Sequence record: OM319461.1
DNA: 64,000 nt
Strand: one strand, 5' to 3'
Shown: in pieces, positions 2,383 through 49,179 of the stretch
Numbering within the stretch: the stretch's first letter is position 1
Layout: each line of letters begins with the position of its first letter
Notes under the pieces: generated by a model
Databases searched by the model: none
What the model saw: the letters and a program-made list of their open reading frames with translations, nothing else
What the model was told of the DNA's origin: nothing
Translations under genes and position numbers: made by a program

Positions 2383-3249
2383 TTAGAACGTATGTTTGTT
2401 TGACTGATAAGGATTTGCTTTTGTGAAGTAAACGACCTCACCAGTTTTGCGATCAAAGCCATAATCCAAGAAAAGACTATGTAGTCCTGATTCTGTTGAT
2501 GTGTACGCAGGCATAAAGTACTTAACCCAACTTGGGTGGTTGTTGCTACCTAAGCCACGCCATGAGATAAAGTACGTCGCATGTGTTTTGCGAGTAAGCT
2601 TTCCATCGATGATATCACTAGAGATCTGCCAGATGTCTTTCCATGCTTTCATTTCAGATGGATGCTTCTTGGCTAGCGCAGGAACAAAGGTATCGATCTT
2701 GCCCCATACTACATCTTCAATATCTGTGATGTACGGACCCATGCCAGAATACTGGCCACGTTCTACTACAGCGGCACAAATGTTGTTCTTGTAGAAACGA
2801 CCTTTGTAATCTTCAGTCCAGCCACGTGGATCCACGGCACGGTTTGTGATTGCCCAAGCAATAGTCTCACGTGCTTCTGATGGTTCTCCGTTCGCTTCCG
2901 TAAATGTCGCAATAGCTAGACATAGTTTATTCTGCAACGGAGTTAAAGCAAGCTTTGGTTTATACGGTTCCTTGCCTTGATTGAGTTTCACTGCCAGGTC
3001 ACGGATCTGTTTGTGCGCAATACGCAGACGTTCTTCGTATGCATCTTCGATGCGTTGTTGAATTTCCAAGTCAGACTCAAGTTCTTCTCGTGTTAGTTCT
3101 TCTTGGTTTAACGCAGCGTTCAACTCTACCTTTTCAGAATAGAGGCGATTGATTGTGCTGCTGAACAACAGAACGATTACTAACAATACCCAGGCAGTGA
3201 TGTTGAGTAAATAGAAGTGGCTTGTTTTTACTTGTTTGTACTTTGTCAT
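2383..3249 (-). CDS. Membrane-anchored SleB-like (Hydrolase_2) cell wall hydrolase (288 aa; start moved to MTKYKQ)
   Basis: CLAIATFTEANGE...IAWAITNRA...ICAAVVERGQYS motif; N-terminal TM plus coiled coil; AGGA SD at ATG 3249. Confidence 0.8.
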   Translation of the reverse strand: MTKYKQVKTSHFYLLNITAWVLLVIVLLFSSTINRLYSEKVELNAALNQEELTREELESDLEIQQRIEDAYEERLRIAHKQIRDLAVKLNQGKEPYKPKLALTPLQNKLCLAIATFTEANGEPSEARETIAWAITNRAVDPRGWTEDYKGRFYKNNICAAVVERGQYSGMGPYITDIEDVVWGKIDTFVPALAKKHPSEMKAWKDIWQISSDIIDGKLTRKTHATYFISWRGLGSNNHPSWVKYFMPAYTSTESGLHSLFLDYGFDRKTGEVVYFTKANPYQSNKHTF

Positions 3250-3347: not shown

Positions 3348-6122
3348 TTAAGCAAGAGGATCTTCTGTATCAGGATCATCTGGGTCGATGTCTAATTCAG
3401 GATCGTCTTCAGGGTCAGTAACCTCAGGAACTTCCTCAGGTTCCTCTTCTACCCCGGCCAAAGGATCTACTTCATCTGGGTCAGCAGGGTCTTCTTCCTC
3501 TTCACCAGTCAAATCAAAATCAATTGGTTCTTCTTCCTCGCCTAAAGGATCAGGAGTTTCTTCTTCAGCTCCGGCCAAAGGATCTGCTTCCTCTTCCTCT
3601 TCGCCACCTAGTCCCAAGTCAATTGGGTCTTCAGTGACTGTTAGCGGATCGGCAACATCTGGGTCACCAGGTTCATCATCTGTACCTGGCTCCAGGTCAA
3701 GTCCGGTGTCTTCTTCAACAAACGGCTCGCCATCATCACTAAACGGAGTAGCCACGCCAGAGCCGAACACGTCAGCCCCACCAGGGACAGGAGCACCAGG
3801 AATAGGAGCAGCCCCACCAAACCCAGCATTACCAGGATTGCTTCCAGCATCTGTGCCATCAGTATCTTCCTTACGTTTTGGATTATCTAGGTATTTCTGA
3901 ATCAACGCATCGTTGTTATCAATACCTTTAAGAATAGCTTTAACCGTTGGACCGATCGCTTTAAATACCTTACGGTAGTGCTCAGGGATTTCCTTGTTAA
4001 AGCCAGATTCACTATCAGGGTCAATAAGCTCCCAGATTTCCGGTAGGATATTGTTGTCCTTCAAGTAGCGACGTTTGTATGCAGATGCATAGATGTTACG
4101 AATATCATCCAGTTGGTCACGCGTGTATTGACTATCAATACCAGCCATACCACGAAGCATGTCATCGGAAATGATCGATGGGAATACTTCATCAACGAAA
4201 CGAGAAATCTTATCCCAGGCGTCTGCATGTTGTTCTACACGAGACATATCTGCGGTAGGCATAACAATCTCAAGCGAACGAACAAAAGCAGCAGGGTCAG
4301 TAATTCCAGCGTCTTTGATTTCTTTGATGAACTGAGGAGAGAACTCAATTACCCGGCGGATGTAATCCAACAGACATTTCTTAAACTTGCGTTGTTTTGT
4401 CATTGCACGTTTTGCAGACAACAAGTCATTTAGAATTACCTGAGTAGCAAACTCACCCTGTAGGGATTGGTCGATTGCTTCTGGACTTACACCTAGACCA
4501 GCATACTGAAGACGACGCAATTGTTGATCAACTTCGGTATCGATCTGCGTAACACGAGACTTGCCTGAATCAGATAACTCAGTAGATGTTTTCGGGAATG
4601 CCGTACCGCCATCGATTTTAACGCGATATGCGGCTCTCTGAATAGAGGTTACAATTTCCGATGGATTGATAGTACCAATAGGGAAGTTAAGGCTTGTCAT
4701 CTTGCTCAGTTCGTGCAAGACGGTTTCTACGGTTCCTAATTGGTCATCGTCATCTTCATCAAGGGTAATTGCCACATCGGTTACTGGAATAGCATTGTGT
4801 ACTAGATTCATCACACCAGCAATTTGAATGATTGCACGGATAGATGAGTAGTAAGCTGTTTTCTCCAATAGGGAAACACCTTGACCCATGTCGTTGTAAT
4901 CCATGGCCATGTAGCTAACTAGTTTAGCTGGCACAAAGATAAGACGAGTTTTCTTTTGCTTCAAGTGACGATGCAACAGGATACGATAAAAGTTATGGTA
5001 TTCTGAAACGTCTACGTCGCCACGAACAAGACCAGAAGACTTAATCTTTTCACGGATAGGCTTTTCAACAAAGTCAACCCAACGACCCATGAGTTCATCA
5101 AACGACATCTTCGCTTTCTTGTCTTTTGAATCTTCAATAAAGCCAAGGTCTTTGATGATTGTGTACTCGTTAGATGTTTCGTCATGCAGGGCTTTCTTCA
5201 TGCGTGCCAACAGGTCTTTCATAAAGCCCGTGTCTTGACAAGAAGTACCTAGCTGACCACTATCGTCTGCAAGGATATAGTAGCCGTGGTGTTTTGACTT
5301 GTCCGATGGATCTCCGAGTGGCATAACGATATCCGGAGACAAACGAATACGAAGTGCTTGTGTTTGACGCTCGTCTTCGATGATCTCATCAATAACAAGA
5401 CAGCCTTCGTTTTTCTTCTCTGTGTGATCAGTAGCAAATGACATATTTTCAAAGTCAAAACCAGATGACACATTCTTGTTGATGATGTGCTGGCGACAAG
5501 AATCACGATAGAACAACTTGTAGTTATCATGAATACCGTCGATGCCTGCTTTGGTCAATGCCGGGTCAGTGTGTGTATGTACACCAATATCGGCAAACAG
5601 ATCAGTAGCACTTGCTTTGTCAAAGCTTTCTAAATCCATCTGTCCGACAATCGAATCGATCTGTGCAGGAGGAAGGATTAGATGAACTACCGCACCATGA
5701 TCATAAAGAATGTCGCCGAGATAGTCGCCAACTTTTTCTTCTAGCTCTAGGTGGGTATTTAGTACCTCTTGAATACGAGCTACTGCGATTGGGTTTACCT
5801 TGCCAGGATAAAGCACAGGGTTAACACGCAAACGGAATTTAAAATCAGACAGGTCTTTTGGCGCAAGTACTTGCGCCACTGTGATTTCTTTTGCTAGATT
5901 TAGGTCAGGGTGAACTTCCAGAATACCTTTTGCTGTAGACAGCTGTTCTGTACGCTCACTCAATAAAGCACGGATCTGTTGCGTCTTTTGTTTCAGGGAA
6001 GACGAAGGTTTGTCGTCTTTTACATTTCCCTCTGCATCAACAGGACGCAACCCTGCTTTAACTGACTTGGCCGGAACCGGGATTGTCATCGCGGCATCTG
6101 ACCAGTCATTCTTTTTGGACAT
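3348..6122 (-). CDS. Portal protein (phiKZ gp129-like, 924 aa) with acidic C-terminal tail
   Basis: Size, D/E-rich tail, divergent position relative to gp128/gp127-like genes; AAGGAG SD. Confidence 0.8.
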   Translation of the reverse strand: MSKKNDWSDAAMTIPVPAKSVKAGLRPVDAEGNVKDDKPSSSLKQKTQQIRALLSERTEQLSTAKGILEVHPDLNLAKEITVAQVLAPKDLSDFKFRLRVNPVLYPGKVNPIAVARIQEVLNTHLELEEKVGDYLGDILYDHGAVVHLILPPAQIDSIVGQMDLESFDKASATDLFADIGVHTHTDPALTKAGIDGIHDNYKLFYRDSCRQHIINKNVSSGFDFENMSFATDHTEKKNEGCLVIDEIIEDERQTQALRIRLSPDIVMPLGDPSDKSKHHGYYILADDSGQLGTSCQDTGFMKDLLARMKKALHDETSNEYTIIKDLGFIEDSKDKKAKMSFDELMGRWVDFVEKPIREKIKSSGLVRGDVDVSEYHNFYRILLHRHLKQKKTRLIFVPAKLVSYMAMDYNDMGQGVSLLEKTAYYSSIRAIIQIAGVMNLVHNAIPVTDVAITLDEDDDDQLGTVETVLHELSKMTSLNFPIGTINPSEIVTSIQRAAYRVKIDGGTAFPKTSTELSDSGKSRVTQIDTEVDQQLRRLQYAGLGVSPEAIDQSLQGEFATQVILNDLLSAKRAMTKQRKFKKCLLDYIRRVIEFSPQFIKEIKDAGITDPAAFVRSLEIVMPTADMSRVEQHADAWDKISRFVDEVFPSIISDDMLRGMAGIDSQYTRDQLDDIRNIYASAYKRRYLKDNNILPEIWELIDPDSESGFNKEIPEHYRKVFKAIGPTVKAILKGIDNNDALIQKYLDNPKRKEDTDGTDAGSNPGNAGFGGAAPIPGAPVPGGADVFGSGVATPFSDDGEPFVEEDTGLDLEPGTDDEPGDPDVADPLTVTEDPIDLGLGGEEEEEADPLAGAEEETPDPLGEEEEPIDFDLTGEEEEDPADPDEVDPLAGVEEEPEEVPEVTDPEDDPELDIDPDDPDTEDPLA

Positions 6123-45862: not shown

Positions 45863-46201
45863 ATGAATAACAACCAGCAAAATCCACTTACGTGGAACGA
45901 CTGTATCGAAGTCCGCCAAGCATATCTGACAGCCTTTGAAGAAGCAAAATCTGTACTACTCAATATCGGCATCAATGCAGCTTCGACAAATCAGACACAA
46001 CTAAAACAGCGTGCTGATAACTGCCTGCACCAACTTGCAGTACTTGAAGATCAAGTAAACAAGTACATGTCCGACAAAGTTCACCTACTTACAATGGACA
46101 CCCCATTAACTGCCGATCAAACACCAATGGCATATGCGATTCATTCGTACCATACATTGGCCATCGGTGAAATCGTGAAAACCATGGAGTCATTTCAATA
46201 A
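45863..46201 (+). CDS. Hypothetical protein (112 aa)
   Basis: GGAG SD; TAATG coupling to the next gene. Confidence 0.75.
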   Translation: MNNNQQNPLTWNDCIEVRQAYLTAFEEAKSVLLNIGINAASTNQTQLKQRADNCLHQLAVLEDQVNKYMSDKVHLLTMDTPLTADQTPMAYAIHSYHTLAIGEIVKTMESFQ

Positions 46202-47670
46202 TGGAAAATGATAACAAACCAAATCTTCGTTTACCTATTTCCCAATTCGACAAAGACGAAGAAATCAAAAACAAAGAATTCCCCTTGCGTGCGCCAGGGG
46301 AACAACTGAATCTAAGCGAACAAAAGACTGCACTCTACAAAGAAGTAGAGCAGTCTGGTTCACGCAAACCAAATGAAAAGCAGGTTCAGCGTTTCCGCAT
46401 GATCAACGATGCCGAGAACCAGGCGTTCTGGCAAGAGGAAGAAAACTACTCTGATATCGTAGAAGATACGGATAAGCTAGCTCAGTCTCTTGAAGTAGAC
46501 GGCGACACGATCGCTCCTAAGCGACTTACTCCTGTTCTTCATGACGAAGGTCAGGTGCTAGGTAATGCTTTCCTACAAGCTTTACGTGCAGTTACTAAAA
46601 ACGGCGGTCATGCACAAGACTACATGTACTCGTCTGGCTTTTGGTTGAAGATCGGTGACTTTGATGCAGAGAAATGTTTCCGTACAGCATCTAAACTAAA
46701 AGATGCTCGTGATAACATCGGTATTGCTACAAACTCTATTTTGTTCTCTACTGATGACGTTCACATCCGTACTGTTATCGTTGACTTCATTCTAGACCAT
46801 GCTCTTGATTCAAACCTACAGGGTTGGCAAGATCGAGCTACTCTAGAAGAAGCACTCTTGGTTACGGATACCGAGCGTCTAATGGGCCTTGCACTTGATG
46901 CTATGTATCCTGATGGCTACCCATTAATCCAGGACTGTAAGAACAAGTTCTCTGATGAAAAGAAATGTGACTACATTACACTGCCGCCAGAAAACAAACT
47001 TGACGAGATCTCTAAACTTAACTTTATGCGCACTATGGTTCTACTGCCTCATCGCTTTGGTGCAGAACAGAAACGTTTCTTGCGTAAAGAAAAAGTTACT
47101 CTAGAAGAAGTCAAGGAGTACCAAGAGAAACTATTGAACTTTAATAACTCTTCTCTTGTTATCGGTACTTATGACTTTGGTCCAACGAAGATCCGTTTGC
47201 GTGGTCGTACACCGTCTTATCTTCAATACAAGGGCGAAGGTCTAACTTGGATTGCTAATGTTATCGATGTCGCAGAGAGTCTAACAGCTCCTACTGCGAA
47301 CAAGAAGCAAGAAGCAGAACAACGTAACGAACTTATTGTTAGTCGTGTTCGTCAAGTTATGACACAGCGTCAGATGTGCTGGATTGAACGTGTTAGTATG
47401 AACGGTGCTTATACTGACAGTCGTGAAGATATCGAGTCTGCTCTAGCTATTCTTGCAGAAGATCGCCAACTGGCTGAACGTGTTAAGTCCGATATTCGTA
47501 CGTTTACCAAATCACAGATCCACGGCCTTTGTGCTATTCCTAACTGGACATGTCCTTCTTGTAAGAAGACACAACCAGATGTTGAAGAGAAGATTAACCT
47601 TATCCCTATCTCGATGAGTGCTTATTTTTTCAGTATCCTGGTGGTCCGAGCTTATCAGTCGACGATCTAA
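46201..47670 (+). CDS. Conserved protein, putative tail/baseplate assembly chaperone (489 aa) with C-terminal CPSC
   Basis: DAMYPDGYP, IPNWTCPSC; ends ...AYFF on a slippery heptamer. Confidence 0.75.
   Translation: MENDNKPNLRLPISQFDKDEEIKNKEFPLRAPGEQLNLSEQKTALYKEVEQSGSRKPNEKQVQRFRMINDAENQAFWQEEENYSDIVEDTDKLAQSLEVDGDTIAPKRLTPVLHDEGQVLGNAFLQALRAVTKNGGHAQDYMYSSGFWLKIGDFDAEKCFRTASKLKDARDNIGIATNSILFSTDDVHIRTVIVDFILDHALDSNLQGWQDRATLEEALLVTDTERLMGLALDAMYPDGYPLIQDCKNKFSDEKKCDYITLPPENKLDEISKLNFMRTMVLLPHRFGAEQKRFLRKEKVTLEEVKEYQEKLLNFNNSSLVIGTYDFGPTKIRLRGRTPSYLQYKGEGLTWIANVIDVAESLTAPTANKKQEAEQRNELIVSRVRQVMTQRQMCWIERVSMNGAYTDSREDIESALAILAEDRQLAERVKSDIRTFTKSQIHGLCAIPNWTCPSCKKTQPDVEEKINLIPISMSAYFFSILVVRAYQSTI
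47625..47631 (+). promoter_or_regulatory. Putative -1 programmed ribosomal frameshift site T-TTT-TTC
   Basis: X-XXY-YYZ heptamer correctly phased (TAT TTT TTC); the -1 frame is open from 47598 to 48104. Confidence 0.7.
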
Positions 47671-48104
47671 AAACACCAAGAAGCATCCGTTATGTGCCAC
47701 CTCAAGGTACAGCCCAAAACATTGTTAATCGACTATTGCAAATAGAGATGACAGGTAAGGCATCGGATGCTTTTATTGGTAGGATCATTACTGAACATGA
47801 AATGGGTTACGTTGACTATGCGAATGATCGGTATTACAATCCGATTCAGTCTGTAACCCACCACCAGACGAAGGAACGCGATACTGTACTCAAGCATCAG
47901 ATCAAACGCATACTTAGATCCGGTGTTTGTGAAAAAGCTCAAATGGGGCTTAAGGACATACTTGCCCTAGACTTGGGGTTTTATGATTATCTCATGAACA
48001 TGATCGAGGAACTAAACATTGAGGAAGCAGAGCGAACTCAAGAACTAGAAGCCTCAGTTCAAGATGCAATTACAAAACTCAAAGAGAAAAAAGAAAAAGA
48101 TTAA
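47625..48104 (+). CDS. -1 frame extension (ORF track 47694..48104), probably expressed as a C-terminal fusion
   Basis: No strong SD at GTG 47694 or ATG 47748; frame is continuous back to the slippery site. Confidence 0.65.
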   Translation, partial: FFQYPGGPSLSVDDLKTPRSIRYVPPQGTAQNIVNRLLQIEMTGKASDAFIGRIITEHEMGYVDYANDRYYNPIQSVTHHQTKERDTVLKHQIKRILRSGVCEKAQMGLKDILALDLGFYDYLMNMIEELNIEEAERTQELEASVQDAITKLKEKKEKD

Positions 48105-48108
48105 TATA

Positions 48109-48136
48109 CTACCTCCTCCCGCTTGGGAGGAGGTAG
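48109..48136. terminator. Bidirectional terminator
   Basis: Perfect 12-bp stem ctacctcctccc / gggaggaggtag. Confidence 0.8.
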
Positions 48137-48142
48137 GTATTA

Positions 48143-48637
48143 TTACATTACATAATCGGCAAAACCAAGCTCAACAGCTTTGTCACCCATGCAGTAGAAA
48201 TCACGATCGAGATACTTGTCCATCTCTTCTTTTGTGAATCCTGCATCTTCTGCGAAGTGGTCATAAACAATCTCGTAGTAGTAACGCATATTGCCAAGGC
48301 CTTTCTCGGTAAGTTCAGCACCACCGTTAGGACCATGAATCATCATCTGACAATCACGAGTAATAGCACGTTTACCTGTAGCGGCACCTGCCACAAGAAG
48401 ATAACAACCAGCTGACATTGCCTTACCAATCGCAAGAACGTTAATCACACAACGGTTACGCTTCATCGCATCACGAATTGCAAGCATGGTTCGACAACAA
48501 CCACCATACGTACTGATGACCAGAAGGATAGGCTCTTGGCTTTCCTTTTCTAATTCATCTAAACGTTTGATGACCTCTTTACCGATACCCATGTCCACGC
48601 CGCAGGTTAAAAACACAGTACGTTCGACATTGATCAT
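48143..48637 (-). CDS. clpP: ClpP-like serine protease with intact triad (164 aa)
   Basis: RTVFLT, ISTYGG, GKAMSAG (Ser), MMIHGP (His), LDRDFY (Asp), AVELGFAD. Confidence 0.88.
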   Translation of the reverse strand: MINVERTVFLTCGVDMGIGKEVIKRLDELEKESQEPILLVISTYGGCCRTMLAIRDAMKRNRCVINVLAIGKAMSAGCYLLVAGAATGKRAITRDCQMMIHGPNGGAELTEKGLGNMRYYYEIVYDHFAEDAGFTKEEMDKYLDRDFYCMGDKAVELGFADYVM

Positions 48638-49119
48638 GCGGTCAACTCCTCTAGTGGACGGAAACCGAACTTCATTACTTCTGGTGCACGAGGTAGTTCT
48701 TTTTCCTTATGCATTTCTTCAGAGGTACGAGGTAAGTTAAATGCCTTATCTAGGATCTCGTTCATGCGTTGACGTAACTCAGTTTGAGCAACGGCTGCAT
48801 TGTTAAGATCTTTATAAGCACCATGACCTACAAAGTCTGGACTAGAAAACGCGAAGATACCTTGAGATGTAAGATAACGTTTGTCCTCCTCTACTGCAGC
48901 TGCAATAAGCAAAGCACCAGAGGTATTACCTGCCATGATAGCTACACGAATATCTACGTTAGGGAACATCTCGATGATGTTCTTAGCAGCTAGTGCGTCA
49001 TGGGGGTTATACAGAGCATCGTAGACACAGACTACGAAAGGACCTGTCATACCCTGCTCCGTGAAACGCATCAACTCTGTCATCAGTCCTTGGACCGATA
49101 GGGTTGAAGTTTTATACAT
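48634..49119 (-). CDS. Catalytically dead ClpP paralog (ClpR-like; 161 aa; start moved to MYKTST)
   Basis: GNTSGALLIAA, KRYL, FAFSSP, QRMNEIL and RAPEVMKFGF align to ClpP, but Ser/His/Asp map to Thr/Ser/Lys; AGGA SD. Confidence 0.7.
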   Translation of the reverse strand: MYKTSTLSVQGLMTELMRFTEQGMTGPFVVCVYDALYNPHDALAAKNIIEMFPNVDIRVAIMAGNTSGALLIAAAVEEDKRYLTSQGIFAFSSPDFVGHGAYKDLNNAAVAQTELRQRMNEILDKAFNLPRTSEEMHKEKELPRAPEVMKFGFRPLEELTA

Positions 49120-49179
49120 GGAATGTTCCTTTTTGATCAAAAAAAAAATAATGGCCATAAGATTAGACAGCCTAGTTAC

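Follow-up and report, generated by a model that had tools for sequence, protein, structure and literature searches.

The 64,000-nucleotide stretch analyzed here (the window; sequence record OM319461.1) derives from Vibrio phage C-ZP2022 and carries, among genes for RNA polymerase subunits, a helicase, ClpP-like proteins and a gp79-like head protein, two adjacent open reading frames annotated as separate hypothetical genes (Table 1). The first, ORF1, is the homolog of phiKZ gp077 and RAY gp267, with tblastn retrieving PHIKZ077 (E 1e-14) and a profile match to phrog_4585 (E 1.5e-41), and belongs to core gene cg18 of the Chimalliviridae, the nucleus-forming "jumbo" phages (PMC10299810, supplement). 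The neighborhood is also conserved, with an upstream ORF at the gp78 position that abuts or overlaps ORF1 in pir03, sm033, BONAISHI, phiKZ and the other loci, followed by gp79-like and virion RNA polymerase subunit genes on the other strand.

Table 1. Coordinates of the features at the ORF1 locus, in positions of the 64,000-nucleotide window.
Position	Strand	Feature	Details
45863..46201	+	Upstream ORF, 112 aa (CZP2022_180)	Positional counterpart of phiKZ gp078; its stop overlaps the ORF1 start codon by one base; no PHROG match
46201..47670	+	ORF1, frame 0, 489 aa, TAA stop (CZP2022_181)	phiKZ gp077 / cg18 / phrog_4585 family; proposed short isoform
46936..47562	+	Span with four cysteine codons: C246 (46936-46938), C256 (46966-46968), C451 (47551-47553), C454 (47560-47562)	Invariant in 149 family members; inferred zinc site
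47625..47631	+	Slippery heptamer T_TTT_TTC in X_XXY_YYZ phase	Last base of the Tyr475 codon and the Phe476-Phe477 codons (TAT TTT TTC)
47632..47670	+	Dual-coding overlap	Last 12 sense codons and stop of ORF1 in frame 0, first residues of the extension in frame -1; part of a stretch (47612-47666) that is 100% identical to pir03, a genome only 85% identical across the locus
47631..48104	+	-1 frame extension, 157 codons plus stop	Proposed C-terminal domain of the long isoform; most relatives match phrog_12109
47694..48104	+	ORF2 as annotated, GTG start, 136 aa (CZP2022_182)	Probably an artefact of gene calling within the -1 extension; in pir03 the GTG is GTA and the gene is annotated from the ATG equivalent to 47748
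48109..48136	+	Terminator-like hairpin, 12 pairs	Just after the stop of the -1 frame, between convergent genes

A preliminary description of the locus had noted the phased T run, and our reading of the sequence, both directly and by script, confirmed this observation. The -1 frame is open from 47598 to 48104 (168 codons) and contains the annotated ORF2, whereas the +1 frame is open for only 36 codons at this point, and the product sizes that had been predicted hold by count (489 aa, and 477 + 157 = 634 aa). To determine whether the heptamer is conserved in orthologs, a point that had been set beforehand as a test, we examined 39 related loci (38 distinct), comprising 26 isolate phages of about 20 genera infecting Vibrio, Pseudomonas, Erwinia, Serratia, Klebsiella, Salmonella, Ralstonia, Burkholderia and Xanthomonas, plus 13 metagenome contigs; a scan of IMG/VR returned only one locus. 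In all 39, ORF1 stops 6-44 codons after the same Phe-Phe/Leu/Ile position and the -1 frame then continues for 142-195 codons, while the +1 frame is short. A full X_XXY_YYZ heptamer is kept in 33 loci (TTTTTTT in 16, TTTTTTC in nine, TTTTTTA in five and TTTTTTG in three), and although six loci lack one (five have N_TTT_TTY and one has T_TTT_ATC), these still hold the U_UUY tetramer. U_UU.U_UU.Y heptamers and U_UU.Y tetramers are both among the frameshift-prone motifs measured in E. coli (PMC4066793). The recurrence of this arrangement, with nucleotide-level selection on the T run, is more than chance. Homopolymer runs are error-prone in some sequencing chemistries, but a sequencing or assembly error, or a recently broken gene, is extremely unlikely because the same frame arrangement occurs in 38 independent genomes and contigs from different laboratories and platforms, and none of 150 diverse family representatives (the best 150 of 1596) is fused in frame, the profile match ending within about 15 residues of the C-terminus.

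The Phe-Phe motif is conserved at the protein level (F476 is invariant), which by itself favors T-rich codons, but codon choice at the site goes beyond this amino-acid constraint. The first Phe codon is TTT in 32 of 32 loci, although TTC is preferred elsewhere in most of these genes (for example, 1 TTT to 20 TTC in Totoro), with a product of probabilities of 10^-13.5 over 27 lineages, and the preceding codon ends in T in 22 of 27 lineages against an expected fraction of 0.31 (P = 1e-7); as the lineages are related, these probabilities are not exact. All eight Phe-Leu variants encode Leu as TTA or TTG, as had been predicted, even though TTR makes up only 0.31-0.65 of the other Leu codons in the six genes where this was measured.

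Every record that we inspected annotates the locus as two separate genes, and the downstream ORF could in principle be translated on its own from the GTG at 47694, the ATG at 47748 or by termination-reinitiation, with the T run merely reflecting the conserved Phe-Phe motif. This appears very unlikely, since the annotated starts are scattered across loci, and 25 of the first 33 loci have no ATG, GTG or TTG in the -1 frame from where it opens to 10 codons past the site (in phiKZ the first start lies 85 codons downstream). In one contig the gene caller found no gene at all in the 480 nt after ORF1. Independent initiation is nevertheless not excluded in the 8 of the first 33 loci, and 4 of the last 6, that have a possible start codon near the site. 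Substitutions between close pairs in the stretch from the ORF1 stop to the first ATG fall mainly on third positions of the -1 frame (1/2/8 and 5/7/19 at positions 1/2/3; a comparison of 201phi2-1 with Viktualia was excluded because of an indel), showing a coding signal upstream of any ATG. The -1 frame is conserved from its first residues, including inside the overlap upstream of the ORF1 stop, and both frames are conserved there, with a mean BLOSUM62 score over the first eight codons after the site of 0.64 in frame 0, 0.16 in frame -1 and -0.94 in frame +1, against a background of -0.92.

No conserved stimulatory element was found. The preliminary description had proposed a hairpin at 47638-47658, which is not supported, as it can be drawn as seven pairs of which three are G-U but is not in the minimum-energy fold, and the 69 nt after the heptamer fold no better than shuffles (z = +0.47). 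Across 31 loci the median z is -0.07, with 4 of 31 below -2, for folds that leave pseudoknots out of account. No SD-like element was seen upstream by eye and no Rfam family matches the region. A stimulator is usual for -1 sites of this class but not obligatory.

Our data suggest that ORF1 and the downstream "gene" form one recoded gene, and we consider a conserved -1 programmed ribosomal frameshift giving two isoforms to be very probable. In this view most ribosomes would read ORF1 to its stop and make the short isoform, which is predicted to end in a helix spanning the slip site, while a fraction would slip back one base with the two Phe codons of T_TTT_TTC in the P and A sites, where the tRNA-Phe pair re-pairs perfectly in the -1 frame, and then read 157 further codons. 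The resulting long isoform would have the same body, including the putative zinc site, but would replace the last 12 residues with a linker and an extra domain. The comparisons themselves establish the site with its phase and conservation, the nucleotide-level selection on the T run, the open and conserved -1 frame lacking a start codon in most loci, and the dual coding in the overlap. That a trans-frame protein is made, that the slip is ribosomal, that its efficiency is modest (since no stimulator was found), that it serves to fix a ratio of two isoforms and that the four cysteines bind metal are inferences, the evidence being comparative only. The same long isoform could also arise if the phage or host RNA polymerase stuttered on the T run and standard translation followed from mRNAs with a run of altered length. 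Runs of 7-8 T occur in 18 of 33 loci, homopolymer U/A heptamers are noted as prone to transcriptional slippage (PMC4066793), and selection for a T run fits either mechanism. However, we regard this as unlikely, since 15 of 33 loci have runs of only 5-6 T, which are short for efficient slippage by known RNA polymerases (slippage-prone runs being about 9 or more), although this may not extend to the phage enzymes, and in the Phe-Leu and TTC variants the run is kept at exactly the heptamer pattern rather than lengthened.

The interpretation given in the preliminary description, that this is the unrecognized lambda G/GT-type tail assembly chaperone pair of phiKZ-like phages, is only partly supported. 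A -1 frameshift joining the two annotated hypothetical genes, conserved throughout the phiKZ-like (Chimalliviridae) phages including phiKZ itself and unannotated in every record inspected, is supported, whereas the chaperone assignment is not. As in lambda gpG/gpGT and P2 E/E+E' (the G/GT role is described in PMC5009743), a -1 slip on a heptamer a few codons before the stop of the upstream ORF would give a minor long isoform sharing the N-terminal body, the downstream part lacks its own start (in most loci here), the arrangement is conserved across very divergent phages and the proteins are absent from virion lists. However, ORF1 is 489-670 aa in the family, 3-5 times larger than G proteins (roughly 100-150 aa), and has a four-cysteine site of a kind that is not known to have been described for tail assembly chaperones. 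Searches of Pfam, PDB sequences and NCBI-style names gave no match for either part, and the extension showed no likeness to T4 gp51. Structural modelling of ORF1 with AlphaFold2 was poor from 8 sequences (pLDDT 51) but good from 149 sequences (pLDDT 89.8, pTM 0.91), and Foldseek hits of the latter model to annotated tail assembly chaperones were insignificant (E >= 0.07, TM <= 0.16). The locus does not lie in a tail module or beside tail tube or tape-measure genes, and the Churi homolog (gp256 = phiKZ gp077) is listed among early-expressed proteins (PMC11849849), which argues against a late morphogenetic role but does not exclude it. On present evidence this is a core, apparently non-virion protein whose function remains unresolved.

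A weak predicted fold likeness to the T4 gp26 family of baseplate hub assembly chaperones (PF12322) remains. Foldseek against BFVD linked the ORF1 model to a 284-aa predicted structure annotated "Baseplate hub assembly protein, T4-like" (E 3e-4; TM 0.30 query-normalized and 0.46 target-normalized) and to a 687-aa "Baseplate protein" (E 8e-19), although these names are automatic annotations and Foldseek against the PDB found nothing. Both families have four invariant cysteines arranged 2+2 and a Phe-Phe close to the C-terminus, T4 gene 26 also yields two products (26 and the internal 26'), and one submitter annotated a homolog in this way. Conversely, none of 80 members hit PF12322 at E <= 0.05, hhalign probability was 14% against the single sequence and 1.7% profile to profile (not significant), gp26 is only 208 aa, and T4 encodes its Phe-Phe as TTC TTT, which is not slippery, and shows no equivalent frameshift. 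It is not excluded, though unlikely, that the gp077/cg18 pair is a much enlarged, zinc-binding relative of the gp26 chaperone working by lambda G/GT logic, in which a shared body would bind one assembly partner, the frameshift-added domain would bind a second and the slip would set the ratio; any such binding, including that of a tape-measure protein, would rest on analogy alone. If so, it would be the tail or hub assembly chaperone of nucleus-forming jumbo phages, which is not known to have been identified, placed outside the tail module.

Like the frameshift inferred here, E. coli dnaX (tau/gamma) and IS3-family OrfA/OrfAB use bacterial -1 frameshifts on X_XXY_YYZ heptamers to set a fixed ratio of two isoforms from one gene, and U_UU.U_UU.C is among the heptamers used by IS elements (PMC4066793). 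Those sites have recognized stimulators (an upstream SD-like element, a downstream hairpin or pseudoknot), none of which was detected here, and in dnaX the shift shortens the protein rather than lengthening it. We found no description of the present frameshift in literature searches (of an incomplete library), in a large recoding review, in the main text and supplements of the core-genome paper (PMC10299810) or in the main text of an antisense-oligomer screen paper.

Chimalliviridae are studied intensively and used as therapy candidates, and a recoding event in one of their core genes would mean that a protein of ~630-690 residues has been missing from proteome lists, interaction maps and essentiality screens. 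The small downstream "gene" is mis-annotated, with scattered and often truncated starts, across the 145 phage records that hold the gene, and in phiKZ itself PHIKZ076.4 covers 80 of 171 open codons. The finding would add a deeply conserved phage frameshift outside the tail-chaperone and transposase paradigms, and gives a concrete handle, two isoforms in a fixed ratio, on a protein of unknown function.

ORF1 and ORF2 of Vibrio phage C-ZP2022 (OM319461.1), in which window position 46201 corresponds to record position 170201, are both annotated as 'hypothetical protein'. Reading the sequence confirmed that the ORF1 codons TAT TTT TTC place a T_TTT_TTC heptamer in the X_XXY_YYZ phase, followed by 12 sense codons before the TAA stop, and that the -1 frame is open through the site, whereas the +1 frame is open for only 36 codons. 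The arrangement of slippery site and open -1 frame given in the preliminary description therefore held, while its interpretation, a frameshift that produces a lambda G/GT-type tail assembly chaperone pair, was only partly supported, in that the frameshift is supported and the chaperone identity is not. A terminator-like hairpin lies after the -1 frame, and none lies between the two ORFs. The stop of the upstream 112-aa ORF overlaps the ORF1 start codon by one base, which suggests translational coupling; an ORF abuts or overlaps ORF1 at the same position in the relatives inspected, and the upstream ORF has no PHROG match. Directly downstream on the opposite strand, a ClpP-like gene and a second small gene are found in the Vibrio-phage clade and in several metagenome contigs (PF00574 hits), but they are not at this position in phiKZ.

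Coordinates of the features at the C-ZP2022 locus and at the related loci discussed in the text
Record	Coordinates	Strand	Feature	Size or remark
C-ZP2022 window	46199-46203		Overlap of the upstream 112-aa ORF stop with the ORF1 start codon	1 base
C-ZP2022 window	46201-47670		ORF1	489 aa
C-ZP2022 window	47598-48104		Open -1 frame	168 codons
C-ZP2022 window	47612-47666		Island 100% identical to vB_pir03	55 nt
C-ZP2022 window	47625-47631		T_TTT_TTC heptamer	X_XXY_YYZ phase
C-ZP2022 window	47694-48104		ORF2	GTG start
C-ZP2022 window	48109-48136		Terminator-like hairpin
C-ZP2022 window	48143-49158	minus	ClpP-like gene and second small gene
phiKZ NC_004629.1 (locus L005)	4077-4592		Frame containing PHIKZ076.4, starting just before the T run of PHIKZ077	171 open codons
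phiKZ NC_004629.1 (locus L005)	4350-4592		PHIKZ076.4 as annotated	80 aa
Erwinia phage RAY (locus L022)	2400-2948		gp266, annotated from an ATG in the -1 frame inside gp267	overlaps gp267 by 136 nt
Metagenome contig (locus L030)	3970-4451		Stretch after the ORF1 homologue with no called gene	480 nt; -1 frame open for 155 codons
T4 NC_000866.4 (locus L034)	3803-4429	minus	T4 gp26 locus

ORF1 matches phrog_4585 (E 1.5e-41) and, by tblastn, 145 phage records including phiKZ PHIKZ077, PhiPA3 gp074, 201phi2-1 gp136 and RAY gp267. The supplement of the Chimalliviridae core-genome paper lists phiKZ gp077 / RAY gp267 as core gene cg18, 'hypothetical protein' (PMC10299810), and a profile search of 1.84 billion representatives returned 1596 family members. 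In an alignment of 149 members only five columns are invariant, namely C246, C256, C451, C454 and F476, of which F476 is the first Phe of the slip site, and we infer from the alignment that the four cysteines form a zinc site. With the same alignment AlphaFold2 gave a confident model (pLDDT 89.8, pTM 0.91), in which the slip site lies inside the predicted C-terminal helix (residues 472-488).

We read 39 related loci, of which 38 are distinct, comprising 26 isolate phages of about 20 genera and 13 metagenome contigs. In every one, ORF1 stops 6-44 codons after the same Phe-Phe (or Phe-Leu, once Phe-Ile) position, the -1 frame continues for 142-195 codons and the +1 frame is short. The heptamer is TTTTTTT in 16 loci, TTTTTTC in nine, TTTTTTA in five and TTTTTTG in three, so that 33 loci have a full heptamer, whereas five loci have A/G_TTT_TTY and one has T_TTT_ATC, and these six keep a U_UUY tetramer. 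In Escherichia coli, U_UU.U_UU.Y heptamers are among the efficient motifs and U_UU.Y tetramers are shift-prone (PMC4066793). In the best 150 of the family representatives the profile match always ends within about 15 residues of the C-terminus, and no in-frame fusion exists among them.

The T run is more than a conserved Phe-Phe. The first Phe codon is TTT in 32 of 32 loci, although most of these genes prefer TTC (for example 1 TTT to 20 TTC in Totoro, 1 to 16 in DT01 and 2 to 16 in RP12), and the product of the per-gene probabilities is 10^-13.5 over 27 lineages. The preceding codon ends in T in 22 of 27 lineages, against 0.31 expected (binomial P = 1e-7). As the lineages are related, these probabilities are indicative rather than exact. 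Where the second residue is Leu, the slippery hypothesis requires TTA or TTG out of six possible Leu codons, a prediction made beforehand, and all eight such variants use TTA (five) or TTG (three) after T_TTT, even though TTR makes up only 0.31-0.65 of the other Leu codons in the six genes where this was measured.

Several lines of comparison suggest that the -1 frame is translated from the site. In 25 of the first 33 loci there is no ATG, GTG or TTG in the -1 frame from where it opens to 10 codons past the site, and the first start codon lies 85 codons downstream in phiKZ, 91 codons downstream in a coral-metagenome contig and, as the first possible start, 52 codons past the site in contig L030, where no gene was called downstream of ORF1. 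Annotated starts are scattered, as pir03 has GTA where C-ZP2022 has its GTG, and in RAY the gene is annotated from an upstream ATG inside the ORF1 homologue, which is another sign that gene callers have no consistent start for this ORF; in phiKZ, PHIKZ076.4 looks like a truncated call of the frameshift extension. The extension nevertheless aligns from its first residues. Between close pairs, substitutions in the stretch from the ORF1 stop to the first ATG fall mainly on -1-frame third positions, with counts at positions 1/2/3 of 1/2/8 for C-ZP2022 against pir03 and 5/7/19 for Totoro against Moabite. Inside the overlap both frames are conserved, with a mean BLOSUM62 over the first eight codons of 0.64 in frame 0 and 0.16 in frame -1, whereas frame +1 scores -0.94, equal to the background of -0.92. 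This dual coding explains the island of complete identity between C-ZP2022 and vB_pir03, which coincides with the slip site and the overlap although the two genomes are only 85% identical across the locus. In the enterobacterial clade of Totoro, Moabite, PCH45, SPLA10 and LPKP23 the 0-frame tail after the slip site is 37-44 codons long and both frames look conserved over the whole overlap; for Totoro against Moabite there are no substitutions at the position that is non-wobble in both frames, versus six and four at the other two positions.

The simplest reading is tandem -1 slippage of two tRNA-Phe (or of tRNA-Phe and tRNA-Leu) on the heptamer. The site, its conservation, the codon choice and the dual coding are shown by sequence comparison, whereas the ribosomal slip itself, like the zinc site, is inferred. 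No stimulator was found: the hairpin proposed in the preliminary description is absent from the minimum-energy fold, the downstream 60-69 nt fold no better than shuffles in C-ZP2022 and in most loci (median z of -0.07, with four of 31 loci below -2), and there is no Rfam match, so the efficiency of the shift may be low. Transcriptional slippage on the T run would give the same product, but the runs of only 5-6 T in 15 of 33 loci, and the retention of the exact heptamer pattern rather than a longer run, argue against it on present evidence, which does not extend to the phage RNA polymerases themselves. Literature searches on phiKZ and its gp77 (gp077, PHIKZ077), on Chimalliviridae and on jumbo phages, a large recoding review, the main text and supplements of the core-genome paper and the main text of an antisense-oligomer screen paper contained no description of this frameshift, although prior description elsewhere cannot be excluded, and no inspected record annotates a joined CDS at this locus.

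Searched as separate pieces, neither part has a Pfam or PDB sequence match, and most extension sequences match phrog_12109, a family of unknown function. Foldseek with the ORF1 model found nothing in the PDB, whereas in BFVD, after the family's own members, it found a 687-aa 'Baseplate protein' (E 8e-19), a 284-aa 'Baseplate hub assembly protein, bacteriophage T4-like' (E 3e-4, target-normalised TM 0.46) and annotated tail assembly chaperones only at E >= 0.07. One submitter also annotated a homologue as gp26-like. The comparison set comprised T4 genes 26 and 51 and a set of gp26-family proteins, all PF12322; the extension showed no likeness to T4 gp51, and profile comparison of the gp26 family with that of ORF1 is not significant (hhalign probability 14% against the single sequence and 1.7% profile to profile). 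The gp26 family also has four invariant cysteines arranged 2+2 and a nearly invariant Phe-Phe three residues from the C-terminus, the same layout as in the ORF1 family, but the T4 Phe-Phe codons are not slippery; the stop of T4 gene 26 overlaps the start of gene 25, and gene 26 has an internal product, 26'. Against a late tail role, the locus lies among RNA-polymerase, helicase and ClpP-like genes, the 201phi2-1 record marks its neighbour gp138 as found by virion mass spectrometry but not gp136 or gp135, and Churi gp256, the homologue of phiKZ gp077, is listed among early-expressed proteins found by proteomics (PMC11849849). 'Tail assembly chaperone' is thus not supported as family membership, and the proposal that the pair works like G/GT holds only for the recoding logic.
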